Assembly: GCA_016748015.1 (NCBI GenBank)
Contig: JAAOMT010000070.1
Location: 186,001-250,000 of the forward strand
Direction: 5' to 3'
Length of the DNA stretch: 64,000 nt
DNA from: Geosiphon pyriformis uo1
Taxonomy: Eukaryota; Fungi; Glomeromycota
The position numbers were made by a program, and so were the translations under genes. The notes under the pieces were generated by a model. The model had not been told where the DNA came from and did no database searches. It worked only from the letters and a program-made list of their open reading frames with translations. Each line of letters begins with the position of its first letter. Position 1 is the stretch's first letter. Positions 2,908 to 63,800 of this stretch are shown one piece after another.

Positions 2908-3690
2908 CCGCTTTATCAAAGACTTTTCTAAATTAGCTCAACTATTCCATCATTTACAAACCAAGAATGTAAAGTATGAATGAACAGAAGCCCAACAAAG
3001 AGTTTTTGATACATTAAAAAGAAAACTTATCTAAGCTTTAGTATTAATGTATTCAAATTACAACAAGCTATTCATTATTACCACTAATGCATTAAGCCAA
3101 GCATTGAAAACAGTACTATTACAGAAAAGACCAGATAGAAGAAAGCATTCAGTAGCTTATGTCAGTAGAAGCTTAAGTCCAGCTGAAAAAAACTATGGAA
3201 TCCCAGCACTGGAATACTTAGCTATCTATTGGGCTGTCACCAAATAGAAGAAATACTTGAGCCAAAAGTTTGATGTGTATACTGACCACAAAAGATTGAC
3301 TTCAATTTAGAAGCAAAAATTTGAAGACAATTGCCATGCAAAATAAAAAATAGCACTATTACCATATACATTTACAGTATATTATAAAAAAGAAAAAAAC
3401 AATGTAAATGCCAACAGATTGTCATAAATGAGACAAATTTAAAAAAACATTTTAACCCAAAAATATAACAAAAAAGATGAATATACAAAAATACAAACAA
3501 CTCTAACATTATATAGATATTCAATTGTTCAAGGAGAAATTATCTCAAAAAGAACAAAACAACATAAAACAGCAATTAAAATATTTTATTAACCATCAAA
3601 ATACACTTTACCAAAAGAACAAAAGAAATCCAGATCAACCAACCAGAGTAATCACAAAACCAGAGAAAGAGATAATATTATTCAACATGC
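2908..3690 (+). pseudogene. Element B pol fragment: end of RT, RNase H, start of integrase
   Basis: RFIKDFSKLAQ..., FIITTNALSQ, VAYVSRSLSPAEKNYG, DVYTDHK, NVNANRLS motifs; cut by element A on the left and element C on the right. Confidence 0.9.
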
Positions 3691-12119: not shown

Positions 12120-14130
12120 AGAACTATAAAAATCCTGATTTTTAGTGAGACCAAGATATAAGGCTTGGTTAGGATATCTGGTTGGTGCTGGTCGAGATGA
12201 GACATTACTACGATTTAGGGATCGCAATGGTATACTGTTAGTTAGTTTCTGATTGTTGTTAGAGTTTCTCCATCCTTGGTTGTAATTAATTGCATGATGT
12301 CTAGATTGGCTATTAACAGGGTTTTGGTACTGGGGTGCTGCTTGAGCCATTGGCTGTGAAGACTGGTAGTAGGTCTAAGGCAGTTGCTGGGTATACTGTA
12401 TTTGTTGTAAGTATTGAGGTGGTTGATATTGAGGCATGGGGTATTAGAATACCATGTTTTGAGGATATCTCAGGTGCTGATATTGATTTCTTTGATTTTG
12501 GTCTATTACTTTTTTATAGCAGTCCTGGATGATATGTCCAGATTTCTGACAATAGTAATAATTGCAAGGATTGGATCTCCAAGGTTGTTGTTGTTGCTAG
12601 TGATTCTGTTGTTGTTGGTATTTGGTGTTATTATTATCTCTTTGTTGTGGTGGTTGATAGGGTCCTATGGTACTGGTTAAAAATCTCTCAATTTTTTGAG
12701 TTAATTTCTCACTTAATTGAGTTATTTTTGTGTTGATATTAGATGTTCTATTGATAGCCAGATTAATAGCTTGAGTATAGATAGCCTCTTGTTCTACTGA
12801 CTTAAAGTCACGAGCAAGAGTAATTGCTTCTTGTAGGTTTGTTGGGTGGTGAAGTCTTACAGATCAGAGGAGACTGCTTTTTAATTCTTTAATAAATTGG
12901 TTAAGGATTTGTGCCACAGTGTAGTAATTTTTTTTAATGACCTGGATTTGACAAAGAATTTGGTTGAATCATCCAAAATAAGTGGTTACTACTTTGTGGT
13001 CTTTTTGTTTTATGATACTGAACTGATTTTGTAATCTGATGAGAGTGTTGGGGTCACAGAAGTATTGCAGAAAGACAAGTTTAAAGGCAGTGAAGTCAAT
13101 TGGTTTTTCTGCAAAGCTTTGATACCATGAGTCTGCAGTTCCAATCAGAAAGAATGGCAATGGTTGAATAGTTCTATTATTATCCCAATTGTTGGCAGTG
13201 ATGGCTTTCTCAGCTTTCACAATCCATATATATGCATCATCTTCTTCATTAGAGAATTTCTCTAATTTGGCGATATCTCGGTAAGCCATGATCTGGTGAG
13301 TAGGTGGAATCTTACTGATTAATGCTGGGGGGTTTGGTGTTTGCATGCTAGAGTGTTCTCCTGGTGCTAATTCTGGTTGTTTCCTTTTGTTAATTTTCCC
13401 AATGGGCTGAAGAATAGCTGTTTCTTCAGAAGAGGTGATTGATGATTCAGTCAATGGTTGGGTTGGCAGTAGTTCCCACATTGACATATTTCTGTCTGTT
13501 TTGTTAAGTGTTGAGGAGAAATTTCCAAACAATGATCCATATTCTTCTAATGATTTGGTCCAACTATGTTGATTCCAAGAATATGGATTTCCAGGAGTTT
13601 GTGGTGTTTCTGACTGGGTTTCTGAAGGTGAGTTGAATACAATTCTACTTTGGAGTGTCTGATGGTATGATGGAGTTGTTGGGGAGAGGAATCTTGGTTT
13701 CTTGTTAACTGTGGACTTGGCTTGGGCAGTTATGGGGTTGTTGAATTTGTTTTTGTATTCCTCAGGGTTGGATTTCACTGGTTGTTGTACTTGAAGGAAT
13801 TGTTTTGCCATGTAATATTTAATGTTTGTATCGATTATGCACAAAGTTTTAGTGATTGTTTGGGTGGTTATGGCTGTTGAGTATCCTAATAAGCTTTGAT
13901 GGATTTGTTTTTCCAGTCTTTCTGTGTCGGTTGCACAGCCTAATAAGCAGTCAATTTTTGCATTAATATAGTTACAAAAATTACTTTCTGTGTAAATGGT
14001 TTTTGCTGGTATTTCTAAGTCTTTTTGAAAGTATTAAAATAGTGATTTTCCATATGGGGAGTGGTCCTTTCTTACTGTTCCAATAGTTGCCACTTTTGTG
14101 TATTTTTGGGGTGTTCTGTCTCTGTGGATT
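12120..14130 (-). pseudogene. gag of element C (N-terminal domain, capsid, CCHC)
   Basis: MAYRDIAKLEKFS...ADSWYQS capsid motif; QILNQFI; decayed YYCQKSGHIIQDC knuckle. Confidence 0.9.
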
Positions 14131-18334: not shown

Positions 18335-20219
18335 AGTGAGAGATTAGTCTTGATTGTAATGTGGTTTCTAGTTCATTTGTTATGAATATTGATTGGGACA
18401 TTACTGCAGAGATTTGGCATTCAGACTTACACATACTTGCTGGTTCTATAAGTTAGAAGTCATTCAATCTTTGTACTTACTTAATGAAAGTGGTATATGC
18501 ACAGTTGTTTATAGCTGTTAGAAAGAAATTGTATAATAGAGGTTATTTTGGTGCATTGTGTTTATTGTATGGTGAAGTGGAGTTATCAGATCATGTTTTC
18601 ACTTGTAGTTAAGATGTTGGTGTTTGGAATGAGATTTTGGCAAAAGCCTTTACACGATGGACTGCTTTGGCTGGTGTTTTTGATCTGCCTTCTTTTTCTG
18701 TTATTTTAAGAATGCTTTCTTATTGTTTGTTGAACTTTAAAACTTATGTTGTTGTGTGTAAAAAGTTTGTGCTTAGAGATTGGTTTGCAAAGGCTGTTAA
18801 GATTTTTAATTGTAAAAAGAAAGCCACCTTTGCTGTTATTGATTTTATGAGATACTTGGTAGAGCTGCATTGTTTTAGAGTGTGGCTATTAAGGTCTAAA
18901 TTTAGAGTTGATATAAAAAAGGCTGGTTTGGTTAAAGATGAGAGTATAGTGTCAAGTTTGTTTTGTAGTTTAGCATCTATTTTTTCAGATGTATGGTCAA
19001 AATGCTTGGTATTATTGAGTTTTTTGCTATCAGTTTTGGCCATTAAAGGTCTTGTCTTTTTTATTCTGGTTTGGGTAGTGATATTTGTGTTCATATAGGT
19101 ATGTAATATTACCTTGTCTGGTCTGAGTGGCTAGCCACATGAAATGAGTGTATGAATTATGTTTAATTTGGGCTACTTAGTCTGGCTTTATATACTAGAT
19201 AGTAATATTACTAAAAGTTTTTGGTCTCTTTTTTTGAATGCTGTTAATATTTGTTTGTTGCTAATTTCACGTTTTCTGGAAGCAGTTGAATTTCCAATAA
19301 CTGAATTTATCTTCAAATTATTTCCTATAATTTGAACTGCTGGGCTTATAAGTGGAATAACCAATTCTGTGCCAGTTACTTTATATAATTACATTGTAGT
19401 AAACATCAACTCTTTTTCAGGAATTGCTTATCTGGAAGCTTACTAAAAATGTATAGTTACTTTGCTGTAAAAGTTAACTCTTCTACAGGAATCTTATTTG
19501 TAGACTATCTTAATGATTCTGATAAGAAAACAAAACAAAAATAAAAGAAATATAAAAGAAATAGAATTCTAACAAGGAAAACGTTTTCTATCCAGGCCTG
19601 GAGTTACTAACAGATTACTAAAATTGGTAGCTAATTAATTTCAAAATGTTAATTGTGTTGAGGGAGTTTCAAATGTAATAATCAGAGGATTTGGTTTTTG
19701 AATATTTTAATTTTTATTTAAATGTATAAAAGGTGATTTGTTCTAATTAAGATATTTTAAAGTGAGATATTATGTTAAGATATTATAAGAAAATACATTT
19801 TCTTGAAGAGAGAAGCTCTTCTTTTATACAACTTGTTATAATACTAGTCTTTGAACTTGCACTTTTTTCTTTGCTACAATTTAGGTAAACTAAAAATACA
19901 TTTTGGTAAACTACAAGTTATTTCACTGAACTATTGATTATTTTGGCCAATTTTTATTAATTTCGGCAAATTTTGACTATATTAAATAATTCAGAGTATT
20001 GTGTAATTTGATTATCTTAATTTCTATTGTACAAATTGGATTATTAATTAAGTAATGATATTTGATAATTTGATTAAATAATAAGTGTTAATCGAAATAA
20101 TAATAATATATGCTAATTAATAATAAAAATTATGAGGGTAATTTCATGCTAATTAATAGCTAAAATTCTACTGATAATAGTGATTGGGCTTTACTTGTTA
20201 AGCTTTAATAAAAAAAAAA
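18335..20219 (+). mobile_element. 5'-truncated LINE 3' fragment (ORF2 C-terminus, 3' UTR, poly-A), split by a solo LTR
   Basis: WHSDLH...CLLYGEVELSDHVFTC; 3' UTR GTGGCTAGCCAC...TATACTAGATA|GTAA resumes at 20180 as GTGATTGGGCT...AATAAAAAAAAAA. Confidence 0.88.
19206..20179 (-). mobile_element. Solo LTR of family A inserted in a LINE 3' UTR
   Basis: Aligns with 2109-2907; decayed termini TATTAC / GATAATA; TSD GTAA (19202-19205) / GTGA (20180-20183). Confidence 0.85.
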
Positions 20220-22490
20220 TATATTGTATTGTTAAAATTTAGTTATATCTATTTATTATGATATAAATAATATTATAAAAATGTTTTTTTAATATATTAA
20301 TTATTAATACTTTTATTTTAATTAAGATTAATTTCTTATAAGTTTTTTAATTTTATTTGTATAATAATATTAAAAATTTTTTTATTAATACTATAATATA
20401 AATTATTTTTTAAATTTTAATTATTATATATATTTATATATTTTTTTTCAAAAGCTAATTTGAAATTTATTTACAATAGTAAAATCTTTTTAAGACTATT
20501 TTTACAATTGTTTAAAGTATTTTTTTAATCTAAAAACATAAAATATTAATAATTTTTAATCCTTTTTTTAATTTTTATAATAAAGTATTTATTAATTAGT
20601 AATATATAAATAATTTTAATCAAAAATTATTTTTTTAAAAAATTTAGCTAATAAATAATAGTTTTATTTAATAATAACACAAGTAAATTTTTTAATATTT
20701 TTGATTGTAATAATTTAGGTTTTAATATAATTTCTTGTTTTTTTTTAATTAAAATTTTTTTTAAATATATATTTAAAAATAAAGTCTGATAAATAATTAA
20801 TATAGAAGATTAAATTATTAAATTGTTATTTTTTTTTAATATTAAAATTATTATATATATATATGTTTATAATTCTATAAGAAAACATATTATAATACTT
20901 TTTTTTAATATTTTAATATAGTATTTATTGTTATTATAAGATAATATTTGTTGTCAATACTATTTGATAATTATTGTTATATTAATTATTATTTTTTTAA
21001 AATTATATTATAATTAGATAATTTATATTATTTTATAATTTTATTAAATTTTTAAACTATAATAATAGTTAAAATATATATAATTTAAATTGTTTTTTAT
21101 AATTAAAAAAAATATTTAAGTTTATATAATATAATTAATAATATTACTGTATTTTTTAAAAATTAAGTATGAATATTAACATATATGTTTTTGGTTTAAT
21201 TTTGTTAATATTAGCTGAATTACAAATTATTTTTTTAATTTTAAAGTATATATTAATTTTTAATGTAATAAAATTTTATTTTAATAGTTAAACTATTTTT
21301 AATACTTGTATTTTTAAGTTTAGTTTAAAATTATTTGATATTTATAATAGCTGTTAAATTAAAAAAAGACAAATTGTTAATTTTATTTACAAAAAACATT
21401 TTAGTTATTTAGTTTAAAGTTAAAAGCTGTTTTAATATTATTAACAATAATATTGTTAATATTTTAACTAATAAGACTTCTTATTTACTTTTTTATTTTT
21501 TTGTTTTAATTTATGAAAAGTTTTTTTTAATTAATAATATAGTATTTTTAATAATATTTATTGTTTTTTTTATAATATTTATTAAGCAGTATATTATACT
21601 TAATAAGAAATTAGACTAAAAATTAATATTGTAATTAATAATATAATTAAAAATATAAATTGAATTTATACTATTTAAATATAATATTTTAATTTTTATA
21701 TGTATTTTAGTATTACTAACAAGTTTACAATCAGTTTACATATTTATTTAATAAAAATAACTTAAAAATAATTATTTATTATTGTTTAAAAACATTTATA
21801 TAATAAGTAATATTCTAAAAAAATTTGTTTTTATTGTAAAAAAATAATATTTTTAAATTATTTTTTATATATAAATTAAATATTGTAGTTTATAAAAAAT
21901 TATTATAGATTTTACTAAATTTTAAAAATTATTTATTAATATTTTGTTTTTATTATCTTTAATTTTAAAGATGTTTATTTTTTATACTTTTAATAATACT
22001 TTTTATATAATTTTTTGCAAAAATTTTGTTTTTAAGATTTAATTTATCAAGATTATATTAGTTTTTAAGAATATTAAATTAATATGTTTATATTTAATTA
22101 TTTATATATGATAGTTAATATTAAATTATAAAAAAAATATAATTATATAAATTTATGTATAAAGTTATTATAAAAAAAGTAGTTTAATTAGTAATAATAT
22201 GTTTGTTCTTTATAATTTATATAGTTATTTAATAGTTTATATAATAAAATAATCACATATTAAATATTATTAAAGCTTTTACAATTAATTTTGATTTATA
22301 TAATAAGTATTTGTTTTTTTTAATCTAAATAATAGAATTAGTGTTTATATAAATATGTAATATAATTTTAATTAACTTAAATAATTAGTTATATATAATA
22401 AATATGTATTTTATATTTAGTTATAAATATTTAATTTGTTTATATATATTAAATAGTAATTAAATTATATTTATTAAACATAAAAAACAA
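20220..22490 (+). mobile_element. Hypermutated fossil LINE (AT desert); 5' boundary approximate
   Basis: 22260-22360 reads LNIIKAFTINFDL...LNNRISVYINM*, matching LSIVESFAVSFGH...LGGDVCVHIDV* of the LINE ORF ending at 60988. The following ~130 nt is the LINE 3' UTR with nearly all C>T and G>A. Confidence 0.7.
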
Positions 22491-23104
22491 ATTAAGAATT
22501 GATTTGATTTTTTTATATATATTTAAATACATTTTTTTAAATTTTATTATTAATTAATTAAAACATTTCAAAATATTTAACAAAATTTTTTAATATATTA
22601 CAAATTTATAATATTAATTTTAATAAAAAACTTATTTTTATTATAAATATATTTAAAATTAAAATTAAAGTTATTTAATTACAAATTAATAAAACAATAA
22701 ATAATATATAATTATATATATACTAATAAAAAATTAAGCTTAAATAAAAATATGATTTAACTTATAAAATTAAATATTTAATTATTATTTAAACTATTAA
22801 ATATTAATCTTATTTTAACAATTATTTAATATTGTTTATTAATTATAAAAAACTTGTCAAAATAGACAAAACTCAATAAAATAAAACTAATATAAATTTT
22901 ATTTCTGTAAAAATAAATTTAACTGGCCTTTTTTTAAAATTTAAACATTAATAAGATTTTTTTACTAAGCTATATTTATAAAAAAATATTCCAAAATGGG
23001 TTTTAAACCCGAGTAATCTTTCTAAAAAACCAGATATTTATAGATTATCTGTAATACATACTCAGGGTTAAAGGTAGTCATCATTATCGCGCTTCTTCAC
23101 GATT

Positions 23105-24100
23105 CGCGCCTGTGTATTCCTACAAATGTTGTTGGACAGGTAAATATAGTTGTTTTTTGAAGTTCAAATTTTTAGAAACAATTAAATTCACTTAAGGTTG
23201 AAAAAAATCCTTTTACGGGTTCACTTTCACATTTTTAATAAACTCCACATTTTTACCATTGTATTTTCTGCTTATCTTCCAGTAATTCTCCCTCTTACAC
23301 ACATAATGGGAGCTATATCGCTTTGAACCGATTTTCCTTATCCTACGTACCTATTAGTTTTGGCTGGTTTGAGGATGAAAAATTATTCTCCTCTACATTG
23401 CCTAAAAAAACCACGATATTTAAAAAATCGCGACTTTATTCATCCACTGTGTATGCAAAAACTGTAAACAACAACCACAATCGCGAATCTTCTCCAAAAC
23501 TTTTCTTTCCTCCAACATCGGGATCGCGCCACTACCTTCCCTGTGCATTCCCACAGGTGGGTTTGGACAGGTAAATATAGTTTATTTTTTGAAGTTCAAA
23601 ATTGTAGAAACAATTAAATTCACTTTAGTTGAAAAAAAACCCTTTTACGGGTTCAACTTTCACGTTTTTAATAAACTCCACATTTTTACCATTGTATTTT
23701 CTGCTTATCTTCCAGTAATTCTCCCTCTTACACATAATGGATTGAAAGAAGGAGCTTTATCGCCTTGAAGCGATTTTCCTTATCTTACGTACCTATTAGT
23801 TTTGGCTCGTTTGAGGGTAGTGGCGCGATCCCGATGTTGGAGGAAAGAAAAGTTTTGTTTTACTCCTGGAGAAGATTCGCGAATGTGGTTGTTGTTTACA
23901 GTTTTTGCATACACAATGGATGAATAAAGTCGCGATTTTTTAAATATCGTGGTTTTTTTAGGCAATGTAGAGGAGAATAATTTTTCATCTTCCCTGTGTA
24001 TTCACAGGTGTTTTTGGACAGGTAAATATAGTTTATTTTTTGAAGTTTGAAATTGTAGAAATAATTAAAATCATTTTAATTGAAAAAAACCCTTTTACGT
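23105..24100 (+). repeat. ~430-450-bp unit in about 2.3 tandem copies upstream of the TERT pseudogene, with one internal segment inverted in copy 2; CGCG-rich putative promoter
   Basis: CTGTG(T/C)ATTC...GGACAGGTAAATATAG at ~23110, ~23541 and ~23994; segment ~23373-23536 recurs reverse-complemented at ~23816-23988. Confidence 0.9.
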
Positions 24101-24184
24101 CCCCCATTGCCCTTCCCTCCTTTGTCCGATCCTATAGATAGCATCCAATCAACTTCAGAACCTAAAACAATTCAAAATTATGCG

Positions 24185-25890
24185 ATGTCTTCTTCAATTA
24201 AGAAAGTTTGTCCGACTTCAAAAAATACCCTCATCACCGATAACTCACAACATCCTTTGGGTCGAGTATTGAAACTTATCTATTCCAAAATTATGTCGAT
24301 GAAAGATTATCTCATATATAAAAAAAACTATAGGCCGAAAGCATTTTTACAGAATGACGATCCGGAAGAATATAAAACTTTTATCAATACTATATTTGTT
24401 CAGCCTGATACAGATAATGGTCATTAATCCAATAAATTGAACCGGAATATATGATGACGTTGCAAGAGGTATAAGATTTAACTTTGTTCTTTTGCGTTTT
24501 AACCCTAAATATTTTCATCAACTGCATTTTAAATAGGTCTTGATCACTGTGATCAAATGGCTCGTTGAAAAATATAAGCCCCAAACATTCAGTGATTATG
24601 ATAAACCTAATGTTCTCATGCGAGGTTATTGGAAAGTATGGTTTTATTAAAAAAATTTTGTCACCTGAAAGTACTCACATATAAAGCGATCATATATATT
24701 ATTATTTTCTTTTCTATATAAACTATTAGGGAAGTAAAAATTCCGAATATACCAATCATTACCCTAATAGTATTCTTAGCGAAATACATAACTCATCCTC
24801 TTAGCAGATTCTTTTTCATCGGTTAGTCAATATATTAAATCTTGGGTCTTCCTTATTTCATGAGTATCTTTTGGAACCATATTAATGACAGAACTACTAA
24901 ATTATTGTTGATATTAGGATTGGAAAATGTGAAACGGCACATCTGCTAAGATGGACATCCATTTTCATTCACTTGCAGAATGATTGCCATTATTAAGCTA
25001 CTGGTAAATTTTTAACCACTGATTGATCTATTCATTAGATCATCGCATTGATTATCACATTTAATACAGGTGTCCCCTGTGACAGTCTAGTAATAAAAAG
25101 TTCTCATGGGGAGTGAATCAAGATGGTTCATCCTCTCTTTCAACGATAAACTTGAGCCTTCAAGAACCTGCTAGAAAAAAAATTTTCCGATTAGAAGCGC
25201 TGTAATCGGTATTTTTTTGAATTTAATGATGGATCATAATAAGTGCTCTTTCTTTCTGAAGTGAACAACAATTAATCCACTGAAGGTGTTCCGAAATTTC
25301 CCAATTATAGTAGGCAACAACAATCAGGAAAGGAGAGTAATTCATTACCTCAAGCAAAAAGAATAACATTAAACCAAAGAAACTATACAACGAAACCATT
25401 GTTGGTTTATCTTCTACTTCAGAAATGAACCTGATGTTTTAAGAGCCTTTCAATAAACTTCCTCGATTAGAAACTCTTTGGAGGAATTTTCATGAAATCT
25501 TATTGTTTATTGATTTGGATAAAATTTAACATTCCTCTATCTCTACAGTAAAAGAACTGATACTGCGTAAATGCACAAAAGGGTGTATATTTTTTATCGT
25601 GGGCCCATTTGTATTCCTGCTACTGATAAAAAGACTGTTTGGTTAGGGTTAACCGCCTCAGCTTGAACAATTTACTCTATAATTCGTTCTAGGTTACATG
25701 TGAATCAATTAACGCAACTCTAATATGATAATAATTCAGATGTGTTAACCCAAGCTAAGCGATACGAATGTAATGCTCAATATATTCTCGGTGATTTTTC
25801 CAAAGCAGTTTCAATTATTTAAAGTTAAAAAGATCCAAGGCTCCTTAAGCAACGTCAAATTGAATGAAGAAAAAGTTGGAAAACAGATTC
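24185..25890 (+). pseudogene. TERT: Spliced telomerase reverse transcriptase pseudogene, N-terminal part (TEN/GQ domain plus TRBD-type motifs)
   Basis: GT-AG introns at 24469-24536, 24636-24729, 24822-24917 and 25004-25069. Spliced product: VLKLIYSKIMSMKDYL / FLQNDDPEEYKTFINTIFV / TLQEVLITVIKWL / PNVLMRGY / YPNSILSEIHNSSS*QILFHRIGKCETAHLLRWTSIFIHLQNDCHY*ATGVP, colinear with the TERT TEN domain. Downstream RVYIFYRGP...WLGL and IFPKQFQL match fungal TRBD-type motifs. Frameshift near 24425; stops at 24802 and 24994. Confidence 0.88.
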
Positions 25891-26149
25891 ATTATCGATG
25901 TCTTGTTTTGCTAAAAACCTTGTTTATACCAGTCATTATTTGTAGTGGTTTATGCGCTCTAATGGTACATAAATGTCTTTATCACATGTTGTATCTTCTT
26001 AATATGTTTCATAATATGCTTTTTGTAGTTATATTTCTCATAATATTCCCGTTATTCTTTTAATTTTTCTATTTGTGTTGATAATCCTGTTCTTGGTATT
26101 CAGATTTTTTCATAATGCATGTTCGTAAGATATTATACCAATTATGTTT

Positions 26150-28900
26150 AATACAAATTTTAATAAATACATCAAATCTATACTTATTAAATATCTTATT
26201 TGAACACCATATTTTCCTATTTTTTTTATTTATTTAATATGTAAGTCCAATCACTATCTAATACAATATTTTGCTATCTTATTTATTTGATCATAATTTG
26301 TTATTATTTATATTTAATTAACACAGTATATTTATTATTAATAATGTTGGTTTTTTTATATTTGTTTTAATTTTAATTAATTTTACTATCTTAAATTTAA
26401 TTTAAATAAATTTTTGTTATATTAAAGATATAATTTTTAAAAACAAATTTTTTAAACAAATTTAAATACAAGTTTAAGTAATTTTTTATTAGGATTTTAA
26501 AACAAAATTTAATAATATATTTATATTCTTGTTAATATTAATATTTATTATTTAATTTTTGAAATTTTTTTAATATTTTCAATATTTTTATTTTAAAATT
26601 ACATATAATTTAAGTACTTTTTTTTATATTTTTATAATTATAATTAAAGCAAAAAGTAAAAAATTGCAAATCTTTTATTTTTTAAAACAATTAATAGTAT
26701 TTTTATTAATAAAGCACTTATAATTATAAAAACTGTTTAATAATGCTTTATAAAAACACTTTTTTTTTATAAAATAGTAATTATCTAATTTTTTTTAGTT
26801 TTAATATACTTTTTTGGCTTTAAGTAAAAGTTTTTTTTTAAAATAATATATTAAAAATAATTTTAATATGGTCACTATTTTATTAAAAAATCAAAATTTT
26901 TAATTATAAACTGGTAACCAAACTGTTATTTTTTTTTTACTATTTTTTTTGTTGTTTAAATAATAAAAAAAGCCAAAACAACAAAAATACAATTTTTTTT
27001 CTCTTTTAAATTAATTGTTAATTCATTTGTAATATTAAAAAACTTTGTTTTTTTTGGCATTTTCAGTAATATTTTAGTTTTATTAAAACTGGTTATTTTA
27101 ATAAAAAATAAAACTTTGGTTTTTTTGGTTTTTTTAATTTTTTACAAGTTTTATATTATTTGTATTAATTATAATATTTATTGTAGTTATAAATAAAAAT
27201 AAATCTTTTATTTTAAACAAAAATAATAAAAAACATGTTAACTAATTTTGTCTAAATTGGTTTTTAAACAATTTTTGGCAATTTTAAAAGCAAACCAAAT
27301 TATGTTTTTATATATATTTTTAATTAATTAACATATTAAATTATCTAATTTTAAAAATTAGATTAATTAAATAAAAACTGGATTTTTTTTCTGTTTATTA
27401 ACAGTTGTTTTTAGTAATATATGAAAAATAATTATTAATTATTAAAAATTTTTTTGAATAAATAATTTTTATTTTAGTATTTGATGTTTTTTTAAAATTA
27501 AATTGGCTTTAGTTAAGACTGTTTTTTAATTAATATATAATTTTATTAATGTAAAATTTGTGTTTAAAAATAATATAAAGTTATTTTATATAAATTTGTT
27601 TTTTAAGTTTTTTTAAATACTGGTTTTTAAATTAAGTTTATTAATTTTGTTTATTTTTTTACTTTTAAAATTATTAAACATTTAGTAATTTTTAAATCTG
27701 TTTCTTTTTTTGCTATTTTTATTTTATAAAACATGTTTAAGAATATTATTATTATTAATATTAAAAAAGTTTTTGGCATTTTTGGTAAAATTTCTAAAAT
27801 TATATTAAAATATATTAATATTTAATAATATGATATTGTTTATTTTAAATTTATAAATACTATAATTGTTTTTTATAATAAGGTTAAAACTAAATTAATT
27901 AATTTTTTTTTAAATACATTGTTTTTAAAATTAATATATTGGTTTTTTAAATTTATGATTATATATGTTTTATTTTTTACTTTTTTGTTTTTTTTTAGTA
28001 ATCATAATATATAATTATTACTTTTAATTCTTAAAAAAATTTAAATATTGTATTTATTAAAATTAATATTTTAAAAAAATATAATATTTAAAAAAAACTT
28101 TTAATTATTAGTATTGTTTTAAATATTAATATTTAAAATATTTAACTTTAAGTTATTTGATTTTTTATTTGTTTTTTTTAAGTTTTTGTTTAAATTTGTA
28201 ATTATTTTTAAGATTTTTAAATTTTATTTTGTTAATACTAAGTTTTATATTAAAATTTTGGTTTATTAATTTTTTTTGCTGCTATTATGTTTTTAAGTAT
28301 TTCTGTTATTATTATTATTGTAAATTTTGTAATTAGTTTTAGATTGGTTTTTTTAAAATTTGAATTGGTTATATTGGTTTTATTAATTAGATCTATTATT
28401 AAGTTTATTAGTGTTTTGATTATTTTAATTACTAATTATTTAATGTTTTTTTTGTTTTATATTTTGAATTAAAAAATTTATATATTATATAAGTAAAATT
28501 TAATTGTTTTTTATTTATAGTTTCAGAATTTATATAAAAGTTTTAATATTATACTTTAACTATATTGTTTTAATTAATAATTAATAATTTTTTTATATTT
28601 AATTTATTATATTTATTTAGTTATTATATATAGAAAATTGCTAAATCAATCTACTCTTTTTGCTATATTAACTTACTACTATCATGTGATATTATTATGT
28701 CATAGTTTTGTATTCAAAAAAAATTTTGATTTATAAATTTTTGAGTTTTAAAAATATTTTTATTGAATTTAAAAAATAAAAACTATTTTTGTTTGTTTTA
28801 ATACAAAAATATTTTAATTTTTTAAATTAAAATTATTTATTTATATACATATTTTTAATTTTATATTATTATTAACTATTTTAATATTATTTTTAATTAT
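26150..28900. other. AT desert, probably a hypermutated retroelement remnant (family unassigned)
   Basis: Extremely AT-rich with residual N/Q-rich, gag-linker-like text on the minus strand near 28260-28480; no motif decoded with confidence. Confidence 0.3.
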
Positions 28901-29063
28901 TATATATTATTATACAAAAAAAAATTTCTTTCTTTCCTTCATCCCAAATTTCTAAAAAAAAGTCATAAGTTTTTTGAAAAGAAGTTTTTTTACAATTCAG
29001 TACAATAAATCCAAACCGTTTCTACTTGATTACAAGGCCATTGTTGGTTCCAGTATTGCTGTA

Positions 29064-46671: not shown

Positions 46672-48760
46672 ATATAATTCTACAGAAAACCAGCACCAAC
46701 GACACCAAACCAAAAGTGGCAGAATCAGAAAATATAGGAGCAAACCATTTAGAATTCACGAAATTCTTGTTTCAACAATACAGCCAATAATTAGGATTGA
46801 ACAGTAATCATTACCCAGCCGAATCAGCCTTCAACTTTTACGTCAACGACAAAATTACTGAATGCTTAGGAGGAACAGGTAACATTAAAGCAGCAAGAGA
46901 AAACTTTTACACAGAATTATTTCAACACATCAACTTACCAAGGAACTATAGTTTTACACCAATAATCAAAAAAATCAACCAAACTATTGAAAGGTACACT
47001 AAACAACAATTTCCCATTACCTATGCAGACAAAGGTAAAGGAAGAATACAAACACCAGCAGCAACACCAAAAGGAATACAGTTACTTAGTTGGAAGAAAC
47101 ACAGAGTAGAATCACTAACCGCTCTATCATATCACTACACACCTGGAAGCACCATTAACATCTCATCAGCAGACACGTCCACCTCAAACACAACATCAAC
47201 ATTTGGAAGATTTTAGTTCCAAAGCAAACAATAGAAGGAAGACTTACTAGGACCATATAGAGTGTATTTTGAAGAATTTAAATCATGATTACCAACTTCA
47301 TCAGGAATTCGATCACTGCCATCTCAACCAGACTTTGAAACCATTACCCCGTAGAAACTATCTGAAGAAGAAGAGAAAGAAGAATCGGAAAGTCAAGAAT
47401 TTATTTATCAAAACCCAATCACTGAAAACCCAGAAGTTGAAACTCTAAATCTTCAAGCTCAGCAAAATCTAAATCTAGAAAATTCGGAAATCGAAACTCC
47501 GAATTATCAAAAGCAGAACAATTCAAATTCCGAATTAATTAATCAGCAAAACTTATCTCCGGTAATTGTCATTGATCAACCACTGATTAATTCCATAGCC
47601 AAACTCATACAACAGCCATTTCAACTACCACCCCAACAACCAGTACAACAACAACTGCTTCAACAGCCACCACAACCACCTAACTTAGATCCAATGGCCT
47701 ATGCACCAATTGCAAAACTTGACAACTTTACTGGCAAAAAGGATGACACTCAAGTATGGCTGAATAATATAGAAAAGGCCATCGCAGCCAACGAATGGAA
47801 TGACGCTCAAGCAATGCAAGCCATTCCCTACTTTCTCAAGGATACCACCGATTCATGGTATCAGAGCTTGGTTAATAAACCACAAGATTTCAATGCCTTC
47901 AAAGCAGAATTTCTAAGATACTTCAGCAATAATAACAGCATCAATCGCCTAGTCAATACATTCACCACCATAAAACAGGGAGAAACTGAAGCAGTTACCA
48001 CTTACCTGGAATGCTTCCATCAAAACCTGCGCCAAATTCAAGCAATTGATGCCAACTATTTTACAGCACCACAGATACTCAATCAGTTTATCCGTGGCCT
48101 GTACAGCAGCATTTTACAACATGTATATCTGTTGCATCCTAGCACCCTTCAAGACACAGTTACATGCACCAGAGATTTTGAATTCACTGAGTTAGAGACC
48201 AACCACGCCCAAGCCATTAACCTAGTAATAAATGGATCATCTGAATTGGATTCCAAATTGGAAAAGTTCAGTGAATCAATTAATAAGAAATTAGAAAGAT
48301 ACTTAGCTGACAATCACACCATTTATTAGCCTCCACAACAACACAATAATCAAAGGAATTCTAATCGTAGCCAAAATCAATCACATCTATCATCTTCAAC
48401 AGCACCTAGTCTAACATGGCAGCCAGAAATGCATGTCTGCCACAACTGTGGTAAACAAGGCCATATTCAAGTTAATTGCCATACTTATAACAATCAACGA
48501 TCAGAAAATCAATACAAAAACCCTGATTACCAGTTCCAAACTCCAAATTGTTATCCAAATCACAATCAAAACCAATATCAAAATACTTACCTGCCAATAA
48601 TGCAGCAACCAATCTACTAACTGCCAGTATATCAAACCCCAGTTTATCAACTGCAGCCACTGGCAATTTATCAATAGCAGTTCCCAATAATTTATCAGCT
48701 GCAGCCCCAAATAATTTATTAGTCTCAACCATCAATTCAAACACCACTCCAAAACTTAGC
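46672..48760 (+). pseudogene. gag of element E (N-terminal extension, capsid 47694-48329, CCHC ~48438-48480)
   Basis: MAYAPIAKLDNF...QILNQFIRGL; CHNCGKQGHIQVNC; same frame as downstream pol. Confidence 0.92.
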
Positions 48761-50470: not shown

Positions 50471-50744
50471 CATGATCTACATGATCCTCGAAGAAGAAGA
50501 ACTAATCAGCAGCTGCACATCAGAATTGGAATCACCATTCAATTCCAATTCAAACTCTGACAATGACAATAACGAGAATAACGGTTCCAGCTCTGTTCAA
50601 AATAGCAATAACAATGATAACAATATTAACTCAGATTTAAACTCCAACTCAAACTATGAACAATATATTGCACTTCCTGACCTCACCAAGGAACAAAAAC
50701 TAAAATAGTTCAGCGATAATAATGAAGGTATTTTGCTAGAATGT

Positions 50745-51130
50745 GCATACAATACTGATGCAGAATTTGATCTGAGATATTTAGAAAAAGATACCATCAA
50801 ATTGGAACCACATTCACGCACCTACATTGATCTGAAAGTAGCTTTAGAAATTCCAGCAACAACAATGATTCAACTAGCATCTAGAAGTAGTTTAGTGAAA
50901 AGAGGGATAAACATCAGAGGAGGAATAATTGATGCAGGATACATAGGAAATATTATTGCTATGCTACAAAATGACTCTGAAAAGGCCTATATCATAGAGC
51001 CAAACAAAAAGATAGCACAGACAATATTCCTGCCTCTGGTTAGAGTAACTCAGTTAGTATTAGTGGAAAAGAGGGAGAAATTAGGAATAACAGCAAAAGG
51101 AATACAGAGATTCGGATCAACGGGTAGAAT
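50745..51130 (+). pseudogene. dut: dUTPase domain of element E
   Basis: DAEFDL, LASRSSL, GGIIDAGYIGNI, KIAQTIF, KGIQRFGSTG (motifs 1-5). Confidence 0.92.
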
Positions 51131-51589
51131 AGATGTACCAGTTAATATGGCAGAGGAAAAAATTGTTGGGCAAGGAGAAATTATCTCAGCCGGTCAAGCT
51201 ATTTCCATTCCACCATACAACCAGTACATGCTAGCAATAGAAAAGAAGGAAAAAGACCAAGCACAAATTTTTGAAGCAGAAGCCAGTCTTTGTGAATTAG
51301 GAGAAGTTGGACTCATCAATCTCCACATACCAGTCAAAGATTACAGCCACATCAAAATTCCCATCTACAACAACACAGGAAATGTCATAGTAATACCAGC
51401 CAGAATCATCATTGAATACTTAAACACTGAAATAAAGGATTAACCACCAAACTTCATTCCAGACTTTCCACAACTTTGTGGATATGTCAATATCACATCA
51501 CAAACAATATAAGATGAAGTGAATGTTATTTGCTCTAACCAGAACAATTGAAACAAATGAACATGGAAAACTTAGATTCACTCTAACGT

Positions 51590-60857: not shown

Positions 60858-63800
60858 TTTTTATTAAAGCTTAATGAGTAAAGTCCAACTGCTATCTAGT
60901 ATATAAAGCCAGACTAAGTGGTCCAAACTAAATACAACTTATGCATTTACTACATGTGGCTAGCCACTCAGACCAAACAAAGCAACATTACACATCTATA
61001 TGAACACAAACATCACCACCCAAACCAGAATAAAAAAAACAAGGTCTTTGATGGCCAAAACTAACAGCAAAAGACTCAACAATACTAAGCATCCTAATCA
61101 CATCATCTAAAAAAATATATACTAAACTACAAGACAAATCTGACACAACACCCCCATCTCCAACCAAACCAGTCTTTTCTATATCGACTCTGAACTTAAA
61201 TCTCACCAGCCAAGCTTTGGAATGATGCAGTTCTACCAAGTATCTTGTAAAATTAATGACTGCAAAGGTGGCTTTCTTTTTACATTCAAAAATTCCAATG
61301 GCCTTAGCCAACCAATTCTTAAGCACAAACTCTTTGCACACAACAACATAAGTCTTAGAGTCCAACAAACAAAAAGAGAGTGTCCTCAAAATGACAGAAA
61401 ATAAAGACTATCTAAAAGCACCTGCTAAAGCAGCCCAATGTGTAGAGGCTTCTGCCAAAATCTTATCACAAATACCAGTATCTTGACCACAAGTAAAAAC
61501 ATGATTTGGCAATTCTACTTTACTGCACAACAAGCACAGCATACTAGGATATTCTTTATCATATAATCTTTTTCTAACAACCATAGGCAATTATTTATGA
61601 ACTGCTTTCATTAAATATATGCAAAGATTGGATAACTTTCAACTTGTAAAACCAGCAAGTAAATGTGAGTCTGAATGCCAAATTTTTGCAGTAAAGTCCC
61701 AATTAATTTCCATAATAAGTAAACTGGGAACCATGTTACGACCAAGACCAACCTCCCATTGAGCACAACAAACAGACTGGAAAATATCTCTGACAAAATG
61801 ATAAGCATTGCCGAAAACAGCAGTATTCTCAGCCATCAAAAAATGCTTATGCACACCCATTGGCAAATAATAAAGAGAACCAGCAGCCACACCCACAGCA
61901 GCATCCACCCTAATGTTACCATAAATTTCAGAATGACTCTTGACCTTGACCCAACTAACTGTAAGATCCTTGTCCTTAATTAAATTATAAATATTTCTTT
62001 TCTCAATCCAACATTGATTGTAGAAATCAGATACTGCCAATGCCACCTCCAACACATATGCATCAATAGCTGTTTGACTGTTGAGGTATACAATCAAGAA
62101 ACAAGAAGATGGCACACATTCCAGAGACAAAGTGACAGCCTGCAATTCAGCCATAGTAAAAAAGGCAAAGCCATGCACTCCTACATTAATGCTCATGTCT
62201 AATGCCAGAAAATATGCCACAGTATCACTAACCACATCATCAGGCCCAGTATTCCTCAATGAACCATCTGAATAAACTTCAAACAAGCCAGACCAAATTT
62301 TATGTAAACTATCTTGCACCTTGGCAAACTCATTAGAATTCAGAATGTTCAAACCATCAGCCTGAAGAGACACAGACAGAACCAATGGTGAAAAGCTATT
62401 ACTGTACAGAAACCTTGATGTAACATCAAACCAGTAGGGAACAGAGCCTTTGAAATCCAATCTTTTCCACCAATGGAAGGTTTTCCAATCCATAACACAG
62501 CCCTTTTTATCAAAGAGCTTATCACTAAAAGCAATTTTAAAACATTTCAAAGACTAAACAAAACTAAGATATAAAGTCTTCTCAAGAATAGAAAACATAA
62601 GAAAAACACCAGAACTATGAAAAGCATTAGGCAACTCATTTGCCAATAACAGCTTATTAGCTAAAAAAATCCTAACCACTTTAGCTAAAAAATTGTTTAC
62701 AGGACTAAAAAGCAACTTAACTGAGAACTGCAAGGGATTTAGAGGAGCCCACTCCAAAACCTGCAGATCCAAGAATCTATGATGAAACAACCAACCAAGG
62801 ATGCCAGAAGCATTGGAGAATGAGACCACAGCAGTTAATTTATTCTCTGATTGCACTTGCTCAAAGGACTTCAGACTATAGAGCAAAAAATGGTGTAAAG
62901 CCTCATTAGGGAAATTTCAGGACAAGTGTGTTTTAGACTTGAGGCCCTTTTTAATCATGACATTCCACTTGTTGTACATACTTGATAAGACAAAACTAAA
63001 TTGAGTTTTATAACTAACAATAGGCTGCAAAACAGCTAACATCAAATAGGAAAACTGCTTGTCTATAATAGTCTTTCTAAGCACCACATTTACAAAGAAA
63101 TAAACATCAGCATAAGCCCTAACCAAATTCAGCTTGAAAAGTCTCTCAGTTGACAAAAAAATTCCCAGATATTTGTAAGTCTTGCCCTTTCCAGCCATGG
63201 AAATAGGTTGGCCATTAATACTTAAAGCAGCAAACTTAACACCTTGATTGATTGGAATGATCACTGTCTTCTCATTATTGATGGAAATGTCATTGATCGA
63301 AAAGAATTCACTGGCAATGTTCAGAGCATATTGCATAGAAGCTTAACAATCCTGACCCAAATTGTGTTATTCACAAATGCACCAGCTGCAAAAAATGAAG
63401 ATAAACCACTACTATTCTCAACTCTGCCAGTTTTTGCCACAAATTTAGTATCAATCTAATAACTGCACAAATGCTTATGTCTCTTAACTTTACACAAGAG
63501 AGGATCATAAAAGATTCTCTAAAGAAGGGGGGAGAAAACTTTATCCTGGTCCAATCTATCATGCACTCTATAGCCTTTTGAAAGGCCAAAATCTGTCATA
63601 ACTCTATTGATCCTATCTGTGTGTATGCTACCAAAAAATTTAATAAACCTATTGCATATCTTGATCCTATTTAAACTAGCCTCCAAGTAATGTCAACCAA
63701 CCGAGTCATATGCTTTGTGCATATCTTGCAAGATTAGCCAAAGTTCCCAACTCTTTTCCAATGTGTCTTCTACCACTGAACCAACTGCAAACACAGGAAA

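Follow-up and report, generated by a model that had tools for sequence, protein, structure and literature searches.

Extent and identity of the TERT-like sequence

A 64,000-nucleotide stretch of the Geosiphon pyriformis genome (hereafter the window, to which all positions refer unless a contig is named) contains a decayed telomerase (TERT)-like sequence, which could be either a dead duplicate of a working gene or the only copy, in which case telomerase would have been lost from this fungus. Searching the Geosiphon pyriformis assembly (G000; 128.3 Mb, 792 contigs) revealed an open TERT gene on the minus strand of contig C572 at approximately 753300–758500, which carries the same peptides as the window copy, but open. 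The homology in the window extends from 23062 to 25911, wider than the 24185–25890 reported in the first-pass annotation, and covers the upstream region and the first eight exons of the TERT gene with all introns kept. Within it, window positions 24101–25911 align by blastn with C572:756596–758477 (1.9 kb) straight across the introns. The identity between the two copies is 86% with gaps and approximately 93% by substitutions alone. The homology ends abruptly at 25911, inside the exon where the region of the RNA-binding domain starts. We conclude that 23062–25911 is very probably an unprocessed, 3'-truncated TERT pseudogene, that is, a DNA-level copy that has decayed neutrally.

The TERT identity of the window copy rests on its paralogue, because the window exon peptides singly match no Pfam family. 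Six of them, each searched alone against Pfam with E values up to 10, returned no family, at lengths (24–96 aa) that give such a search low power, and the 80-aa peptide of exon 1, compared with 1.84 billion representatives, retrieved no TERT relative, its sole match being an unrelated repetitive protein (P0001). The first-pass annotation had tied its TERT assignment to profile matches of the spliced peptide; the single exon peptides do not provide them, whereas the DNA is collinear, introns included, with a bona fide TERT gene carrying PF12009 and PF21399. The order from the N-terminal region through the linker to the start of the TERT RNA-binding domain (TRBD) is kept. Neither TRBD core, reverse transcriptase (RT) nor C-terminal extension (CTE) sequence was found across the 64-kb window by blastn and tblastx, in agreement with the earlier remark that no RT motifs follow. 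The window copy therefore lacks these parts and cannot encode the enzyme. Rfam and tRNA scans of the window returned nothing.

Exon–intron organization of the window copy

The copied sequence lies on the plus strand and begins with upstream DNA of the TERT locus (23062–24100), arranged as approximately 2.3 units of about 432 bp that are 83–88% identical to C572:758637–758948 by blastn. In a whole-genome search, this upstream sequence occurs solely beside the three young TERT copies (the window copy, C572 and a copy on contig C718). The duplicated upstream region also holds an inverted repeat of approximately 170 nt (23371–23539/23813–23992; 98% identity), whose arms are found nowhere else in the genome and which is much younger than the TERT duplication. 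Directly before the start codon lies a 33-bp leader insertion (24150–24182) that is absent from C572 and C718 in a three-way alignment.

Exon 1 (24185–24468) starts with an ATG at 24185 and corresponds to a C572 exon that is open from MSSS to its donor. In the window copy it is disrupted by a 10-bp deletion after 24420, which shifts the frame and yields a TAA at 24425–24427, and by a stop in the ancestral frame (TCA>TAA, 24433–24435). Intron 1 (24469–24536, 68 nt, GT..AG) is evident from the sequence and from a joint, 24466>24535, in a contig of the public run X3, and is followed by exon 2 (24537–24635), whose 33 codons are still open and contain the PNVLMRGY piece. Intron 2 (24636–24729, 94 nt, GT..AG) likewise has, in addition to its sequence, a 94-nt joint in a C572-type X3 contig. 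Exon 3 (24730–24821) carries TGG>TAG at 24802–24804, at the conserved W, where C572 reads CWQILFNR, and intron 3 (24822–24917, 96 nt, GT..AG) is collinear with that of C572, whose frame stays open across it. The GQ-motif exon 4 (24918–25003) has lost the Q of the motif to a stop (CAA in C572, TAA at 24994–24996), and intron 4 (25004–25069, 66 nt, GT..AG) is again recognizable by sequence and collinear with C572. These introns are the four GT–AG introns described by the first-pass annotation, and its quoted peptide pieces are present; its reading of both the W and the GQ-motif Q as stops, and of a frameshift, holds as well, with several further frameshifts beyond the one after 24420.

Exon 5 (25070–25198) is frameshifted by a 10-bp deletion after 25106 and has lost its end and true donor to a 28-bp deletion after 25198; the remnant of intron 5 (25199–25261) is placed by alignment, and a contig of run X2 is spliced across 25209–25310 instead. 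Exon 6 (25262–25483), a Ser/Asn-rich linker, contains three frameshifting deletions (1 bp after 25263, 19 bp after 25300 and 7 bp after 25343) and one stop (CAA>TAA, 25440–25442). The donor GT of intron 6 (remnant, 25484–25548) is destroyed by a 1-bp deletion after 25484. Exon 7 (25549–25662), which contains the RVYIFYRGP piece, has two stops (GAA>TAA, 25568–25570; TTA>TAA, 25650–25652) and one extra base (25646) that shifts the frame, and the donor of intron 7 (25663–25739) has changed from GT to TT at 25663–25664. The remnant of exon 8 (25740–25911), with IFPKQFQL, corresponds to the start of the RNA-binding domain region and bears a frameshifting 2-bp deletion after 25785 and an in-frame 33-bp deletion after 25824.

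Neutral decay beside a constrained parent gene

In total, the window copy has accumulated six stop-creating substitutions, nine deletions, one 1-bp insertion and three lost splice donors, the exon frame being shifted by seven of the nine deletions and by the insertion. An alternative genetic code of the ciliate type, in which TAA and TAG are read as Q, was rejected, as the paralogue has TGG and CAA at the respective positions and the genome is fungal. RIP-type hypermutation was likewise rejected: 27 of the 69 window-specific substitutions are C>T or G>A, and these favour no particular dinucleotide (contexts CA 9, CT 8, CC 5, CG 5). The substitution spectrum is ordinary and AT-biased, and the GC content is 32.6% as compared with 33.7% in the parent.

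Changes were polarised with the third young copy, C718, and the C572 exon columns were joined for codon classification. On the window branch, exons have changed faster than introns (0.049 vs 0.031 changes per site), with 11 synonymous, 36 non-synonymous and 6 stop changes. By comparison, on the C572 branch exons have changed more slowly than introns (0.018 vs 0.037 changes per site), with 6 synonymous and 14 non-synonymous changes and no stop. This is the rate pattern of a dead window copy beside a constrained C572 gene. In a tree of six copies, the window copy, C572 and C718 form a group with support of 100/99; within this group the window copy is weakly supported as the first to branch off (84/84), and the branch of C572 is the shortest. 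The window locus accordingly combines the features by which unprocessed pseudogenes are recognized, namely kept introns, disabling mutations, neutral substitutions and a functional parent elsewhere.

An intact TERT gene and ordinary telomeres

Several conserved regions of TERT are found in the C572 gene. A genome scan with the Pfam Telomerase_RBD profile found a complete domain, split over exons, at C572:755736–756323 on the minus strand, and weaker pieces on other contigs. PF12009 is distributed over four C572 exon pieces (profile positions 1–30, 27–55, 67–99 and 99–131), and in the genome search it reached 63.1 bits for neighbouring single-frame matches at this locus. Furthermore, a 156-codon open exon matches TERT_C (PF21399; 47.6 bits, E 2.5e-12), a profile matched nowhere else in the genome; this CTE exon is broken in C718 and in an older copy on C608. 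The motif D/E exon matches human TERT chains (for example 7qxa_A, E 2.5e-10), and the open segments contain, by eye, what we take to be the T motif and RT motifs 1, 2, A, B' and C. The eight 5' exons, in their inferred structure, form one open frame of 405 codons. By its sequence, the C572 TERT is intact, judged from exon 9 onward by open segments with every conserved block.

Similarity of the N-terminal region to known TEN domains is slight. The GQ-motif exon of C572 matches Pfam TEN_TERT (PF11474) at positions 109–141 of 156 with an E value of 0.051 and 14.2 bits (cut-off 25), the genome-wide scan with PF11474 gave no match, as in the control genomes, and the TEN region of C572 found no match among PDB sequences. 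The N-terminal region is nevertheless likely to be a TEN domain.

The telomere repeats give a consistent picture. A pattern of five TTAGGG units has 783 matches in the genome versus 0 for the control, and the arrays lie at contig ends (for example C22:72–185, C28:59–244, C42:4–405 and C334:30034–30135), in the CCCTAA sense at contig starts and, where listed, in the TTAGGG sense late in contigs, which is the orientation of telomeres. The first-pass annotation had raised the possibility that the window copy is the sole TERT and that telomerase has been lost, and had pointed to the chromosome ends as a place where this would be visible. The window copy is indeed dead, and nothing else remains in favour of the loss. 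Against it stand the intact gene with TRBD, RT motifs and CTE, the presence of spliced contigs of C572 type and the telomeric arrays, so that loss of telomerase has practically no probability left. The genome sequence indicates that Geosiphon pyriformis retains telomerase, with a single intact TERT at C572 and ordinary TTAGGG telomeres.

Origin of the copy and its repeat-rich surroundings

According to the model that we favour, approximately 2.35 kb of the TERT locus would have been copied as DNA into a repeat-rich place, including about 0.3 kb of upstream sequence and exons 1–8 with their introns. The copied part encodes the N-terminal (TEN-type) region and the linker and extends into the beginning of the RNA-binding domain. 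The core of the TRBD, the RT and the C-terminal part may have been missing from the outset or may have been lost since, and the copy then decayed neutrally. We infer that it lacks function. No transposon ends, terminal inverted or direct repeats or target-site duplication were found around the fragment, where there are only weak AT-rich pairs.

The window is AT-rich eukaryotic DNA with Ty3/gypsy-type open reading frames, including gag (12972–13844, minus strand; 47694–48326, plus strand), a dUTPase domain in a Ty3/gypsy-type element (50733–51440, E 2.6e-18) and RNase H (61642–62550, minus strand). Such a retroelement-rich neighbourhood could suggest a processed, RNA-mediated retrocopy. LINE-mediated copies are truncated at the 5' end. 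The window copy, by comparison, is truncated at its 3' end, contains all seven introns and an upstream sequence that does not look transcribed, and has no poly(A) tail at 25911, leaving the retrocopy a negligible probability. That the introns and upstream sequence were kept therefore bears out the earlier view of a dead duplicate made at the DNA level.

Equally, the window copy could be an assembly artefact, or an allelic or haplotig version of the C572 gene, given that the genome is repeat-rich and multinucleate and that X1, the best of the DNA runs, probably consists of the data behind the assembly itself. However, the sequences flanking the copy bear no relation to the C572 flanks, contigs of X1 reproduce each window-specific deletion exactly, run X3 from a second study has window-type sequence, and the divergence (7–8% plus at least 11 indels) is far above the allelic level. 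We thus regard an artefact or haplotig as very improbable and retain the reading of a genuine DNA-level duplicate.

On both sides, the 32% G+C TERT fragment is flanked by deserts of 10–12% G+C (20200–22900 and 26000–28900). An insertion of the TERT fragment into a single AT-rich element, of which another copy lies upstream of C572, was considered and is not claimed: both deserts match the same part of that element, and the scores (320, 201 and 140 bits, as compared with up to 129 bits for a Markov control) are only partly above the control. The possibility that the desert at 25912–28950 is a transition-hypermutated middle part of TERT was rejected, since purine/pyrimidine k-mer diagonals gave 83 hits as compared with 79 after shuffling. 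A dispersed repeat of approximately 170 bp, with more than 30 genome copies of 73–79% identity, lies immediately 3' of the intact TERT (C572:753207–753384), and another copy of it is found in the window at 27491–27664, with 10.7% G+C as compared with 21.5% in the C572 copy; G>A and C>T are among the commonest differences between these two. Because the spectrum of the TERT fragment is ordinary between the deserts, the G/C-stripping would have spared the 2.8-kb duplicate or pre-dated it.

Apparent transcription of the window copy and of its parent

Three public runs (X1, X2 and X3) were examined as contigs; X1 is DNA, the records of X2 and X3 do not identify them as RNA, and a Logan contig may join sequence from different paralogues. 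In X1, the paralogue contigs diverge at the end of exon 8, with loose ends at 25901 and 25911. An X2 contig is identical to 25069–25207, a stretch that includes two window-specific deletions, and is joined to 25310–25339 through a GT..AG gap (25209–25310), which is a cryptic intron substituting for the deleted true donor of intron 5. In X3, from a separate study, a contig is identical to 24354–24466 (113 nt), the 10-bp deletion included, and is joined across intron 1 (24469–24536); its 3' side has C572-type letters and it may therefore be chimeric. A further X3 joint connects a cryptic donor at 25642, a short way 5' of the inactivated intron 7 donor, to the normal acceptor at 25739. Another X3 contig departs from the window at four positions, one of them in the W codon, each time with the C572 variant; it is spliced at intron 2, and the parent gene therefore appears to be expressed.

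The simplest reading, and probably the correct one, is that the window pseudogene is transcribed and aberrantly spliced. Promoter-proximal sequence would have come along with the copy, so that the dead copy would still be transcribed, and splicing of its RNA would use the introns that survive and, in place of the destroyed true donors, cryptic sites.

Transcription could also mean that the copy has been kept because it modulates the real TERT, either through a non-coding RNA or through a short N-terminal peptide encoded by the 80-codon open reading frame of exon 1. Window-specific spliced contigs in two runs from two studies and the retained upstream sequence are compatible with such a role, and Nicotiana has truncated TERT pseudogenes that are transcribed (PMC7916837). 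The pattern of change is nonetheless neutral, with an exon rate no lower than the intron rate and non-synonymous changes outnumbering synonymous ones by 36 to 11, splice donors have been lost with cryptic splicing in their place, and the sister copy C718 decays independently. Retention for such a role is accordingly improbable, and we continue to read the locus as a dead copy that is probably still transcribed.

Dispersal of TERT-derived DNA in the genome

Our genome comparison reveals TERT-derived DNA at no fewer than 13 further places, and all of those whose frames were examined are broken. The expectation of a single-copy TERT, from which the first-pass annotation had started, thus holds for the intact gene, of which profile and DNA searches count one, and fails for TERT-derived DNA as a whole. 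The fragments differ in age (64–93% identity), and some are gene-sized. A second young pseudogene (C718:2134988–2138702) is a copy of C572:753188–759233 with 87–93% identity; it lacks approximately 2 kb internally, from the TRBD to the region of RT motif A, has frameshifts in its C-terminal exon and decays independently of the window copy. By comparison, the older copy at C608:677694–680711 (71–81% to C572) holds all except the N-terminal exons and has many frameshifts and stops.

Shorter pieces lie on C343, C344, C392, C412, C563 and C385, with 64–80% identity to C572 and, in one 57-nt block on C392, 95%. The C392 copy was considered as a processed retrocopy and rejected, as one aligned block still spans introns. 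In addition, a composite of two distant TERT pieces, which fuses gene positions ~1518–1677 and ~3204–3374, occurs at two sites on C472 (2061–2453 and 44348–44603) and once each on C562 (20706–21024) and C697 (28173–28491), with 71–80% identity to C572 (91% in one 67-nt block). Three of these four sites lie within blocks that are 92–97% identical over 1.6 to approximately 6 kb, and the fourth is 71–83% alike. An open reading frame with a TLDc domain lies near the composite. Its recurrence may be due to haplotigs, to segmental duplication or to a mobile element that captured it.

For an RPB2-like gene (C669) searched as a control, no additional copy of the coding part exists at the DNA level, and only its flanking repeat recurs. 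Coming from one control gene, this contrast in copy number is suggestive only. It is conceivable, though in our estimate unlikely, that TERT is unusually duplication-prone here, and that a capture mechanism spreads its fragments or the fragments are retained as RNAs which adjust TERT dosage.

Comparison with known TERT copies and implications

TERT is usually single-copy, and truncated, transcribed TERT pseudogenes have been described in Nicotiana, as have extra TERT-like fragments in several diploid plants (PMC7916837). TERT_D of Nicotiana sylvestris and N. tabacum (PMC7916837) resembles the window copy in being truncated, in its indels and premature stops, in its occurrence beside a functional TERT and in being transcribed, which the window copy apparently is too. 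By comparison, TERT_D is a plant sequence examined in work on polyploidy, whereas the window copy is found in a glomeromycotinan fungus, comprises only 2.35 kb of the 5' part and is one of many dispersed fragments. A truncated N-terminal TERT-like locus (208 aa, LOC18443854) and extra copies in Populus, Mimulus and Vigna (PMC7916837) are likewise partial loci beside one working gene, as in Geosiphon; those plant genomes have one extra copy each, as compared with the at least 13 further places of differing ages seen here. With canonical TERT (human TERT, PDB 7qxa; PF12009, PF21399 and PF11474), the C572 parent shares the TRBD, RT motifs and CTE. Among unprocessed (duplicated) pseudogenes in general, the window copy is a textbook case, set apart only by the gene from which it derives. 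A literature search found no paper that describes TERT pseudogenes from arbuscular mycorrhizal fungi or from their relatives.

The locus is a clear-cut unprocessed TERT pseudogene from an early-diverging fungus. The many TERT look-alikes in this genome also call for caution in annotation, as they could be taken for the gene itself or push copy counts too high. That TERT fragments are dispersed and apparently transcribed would be of interest to those who study gene duplication in Glomeromycotina more than to telomere biologists.
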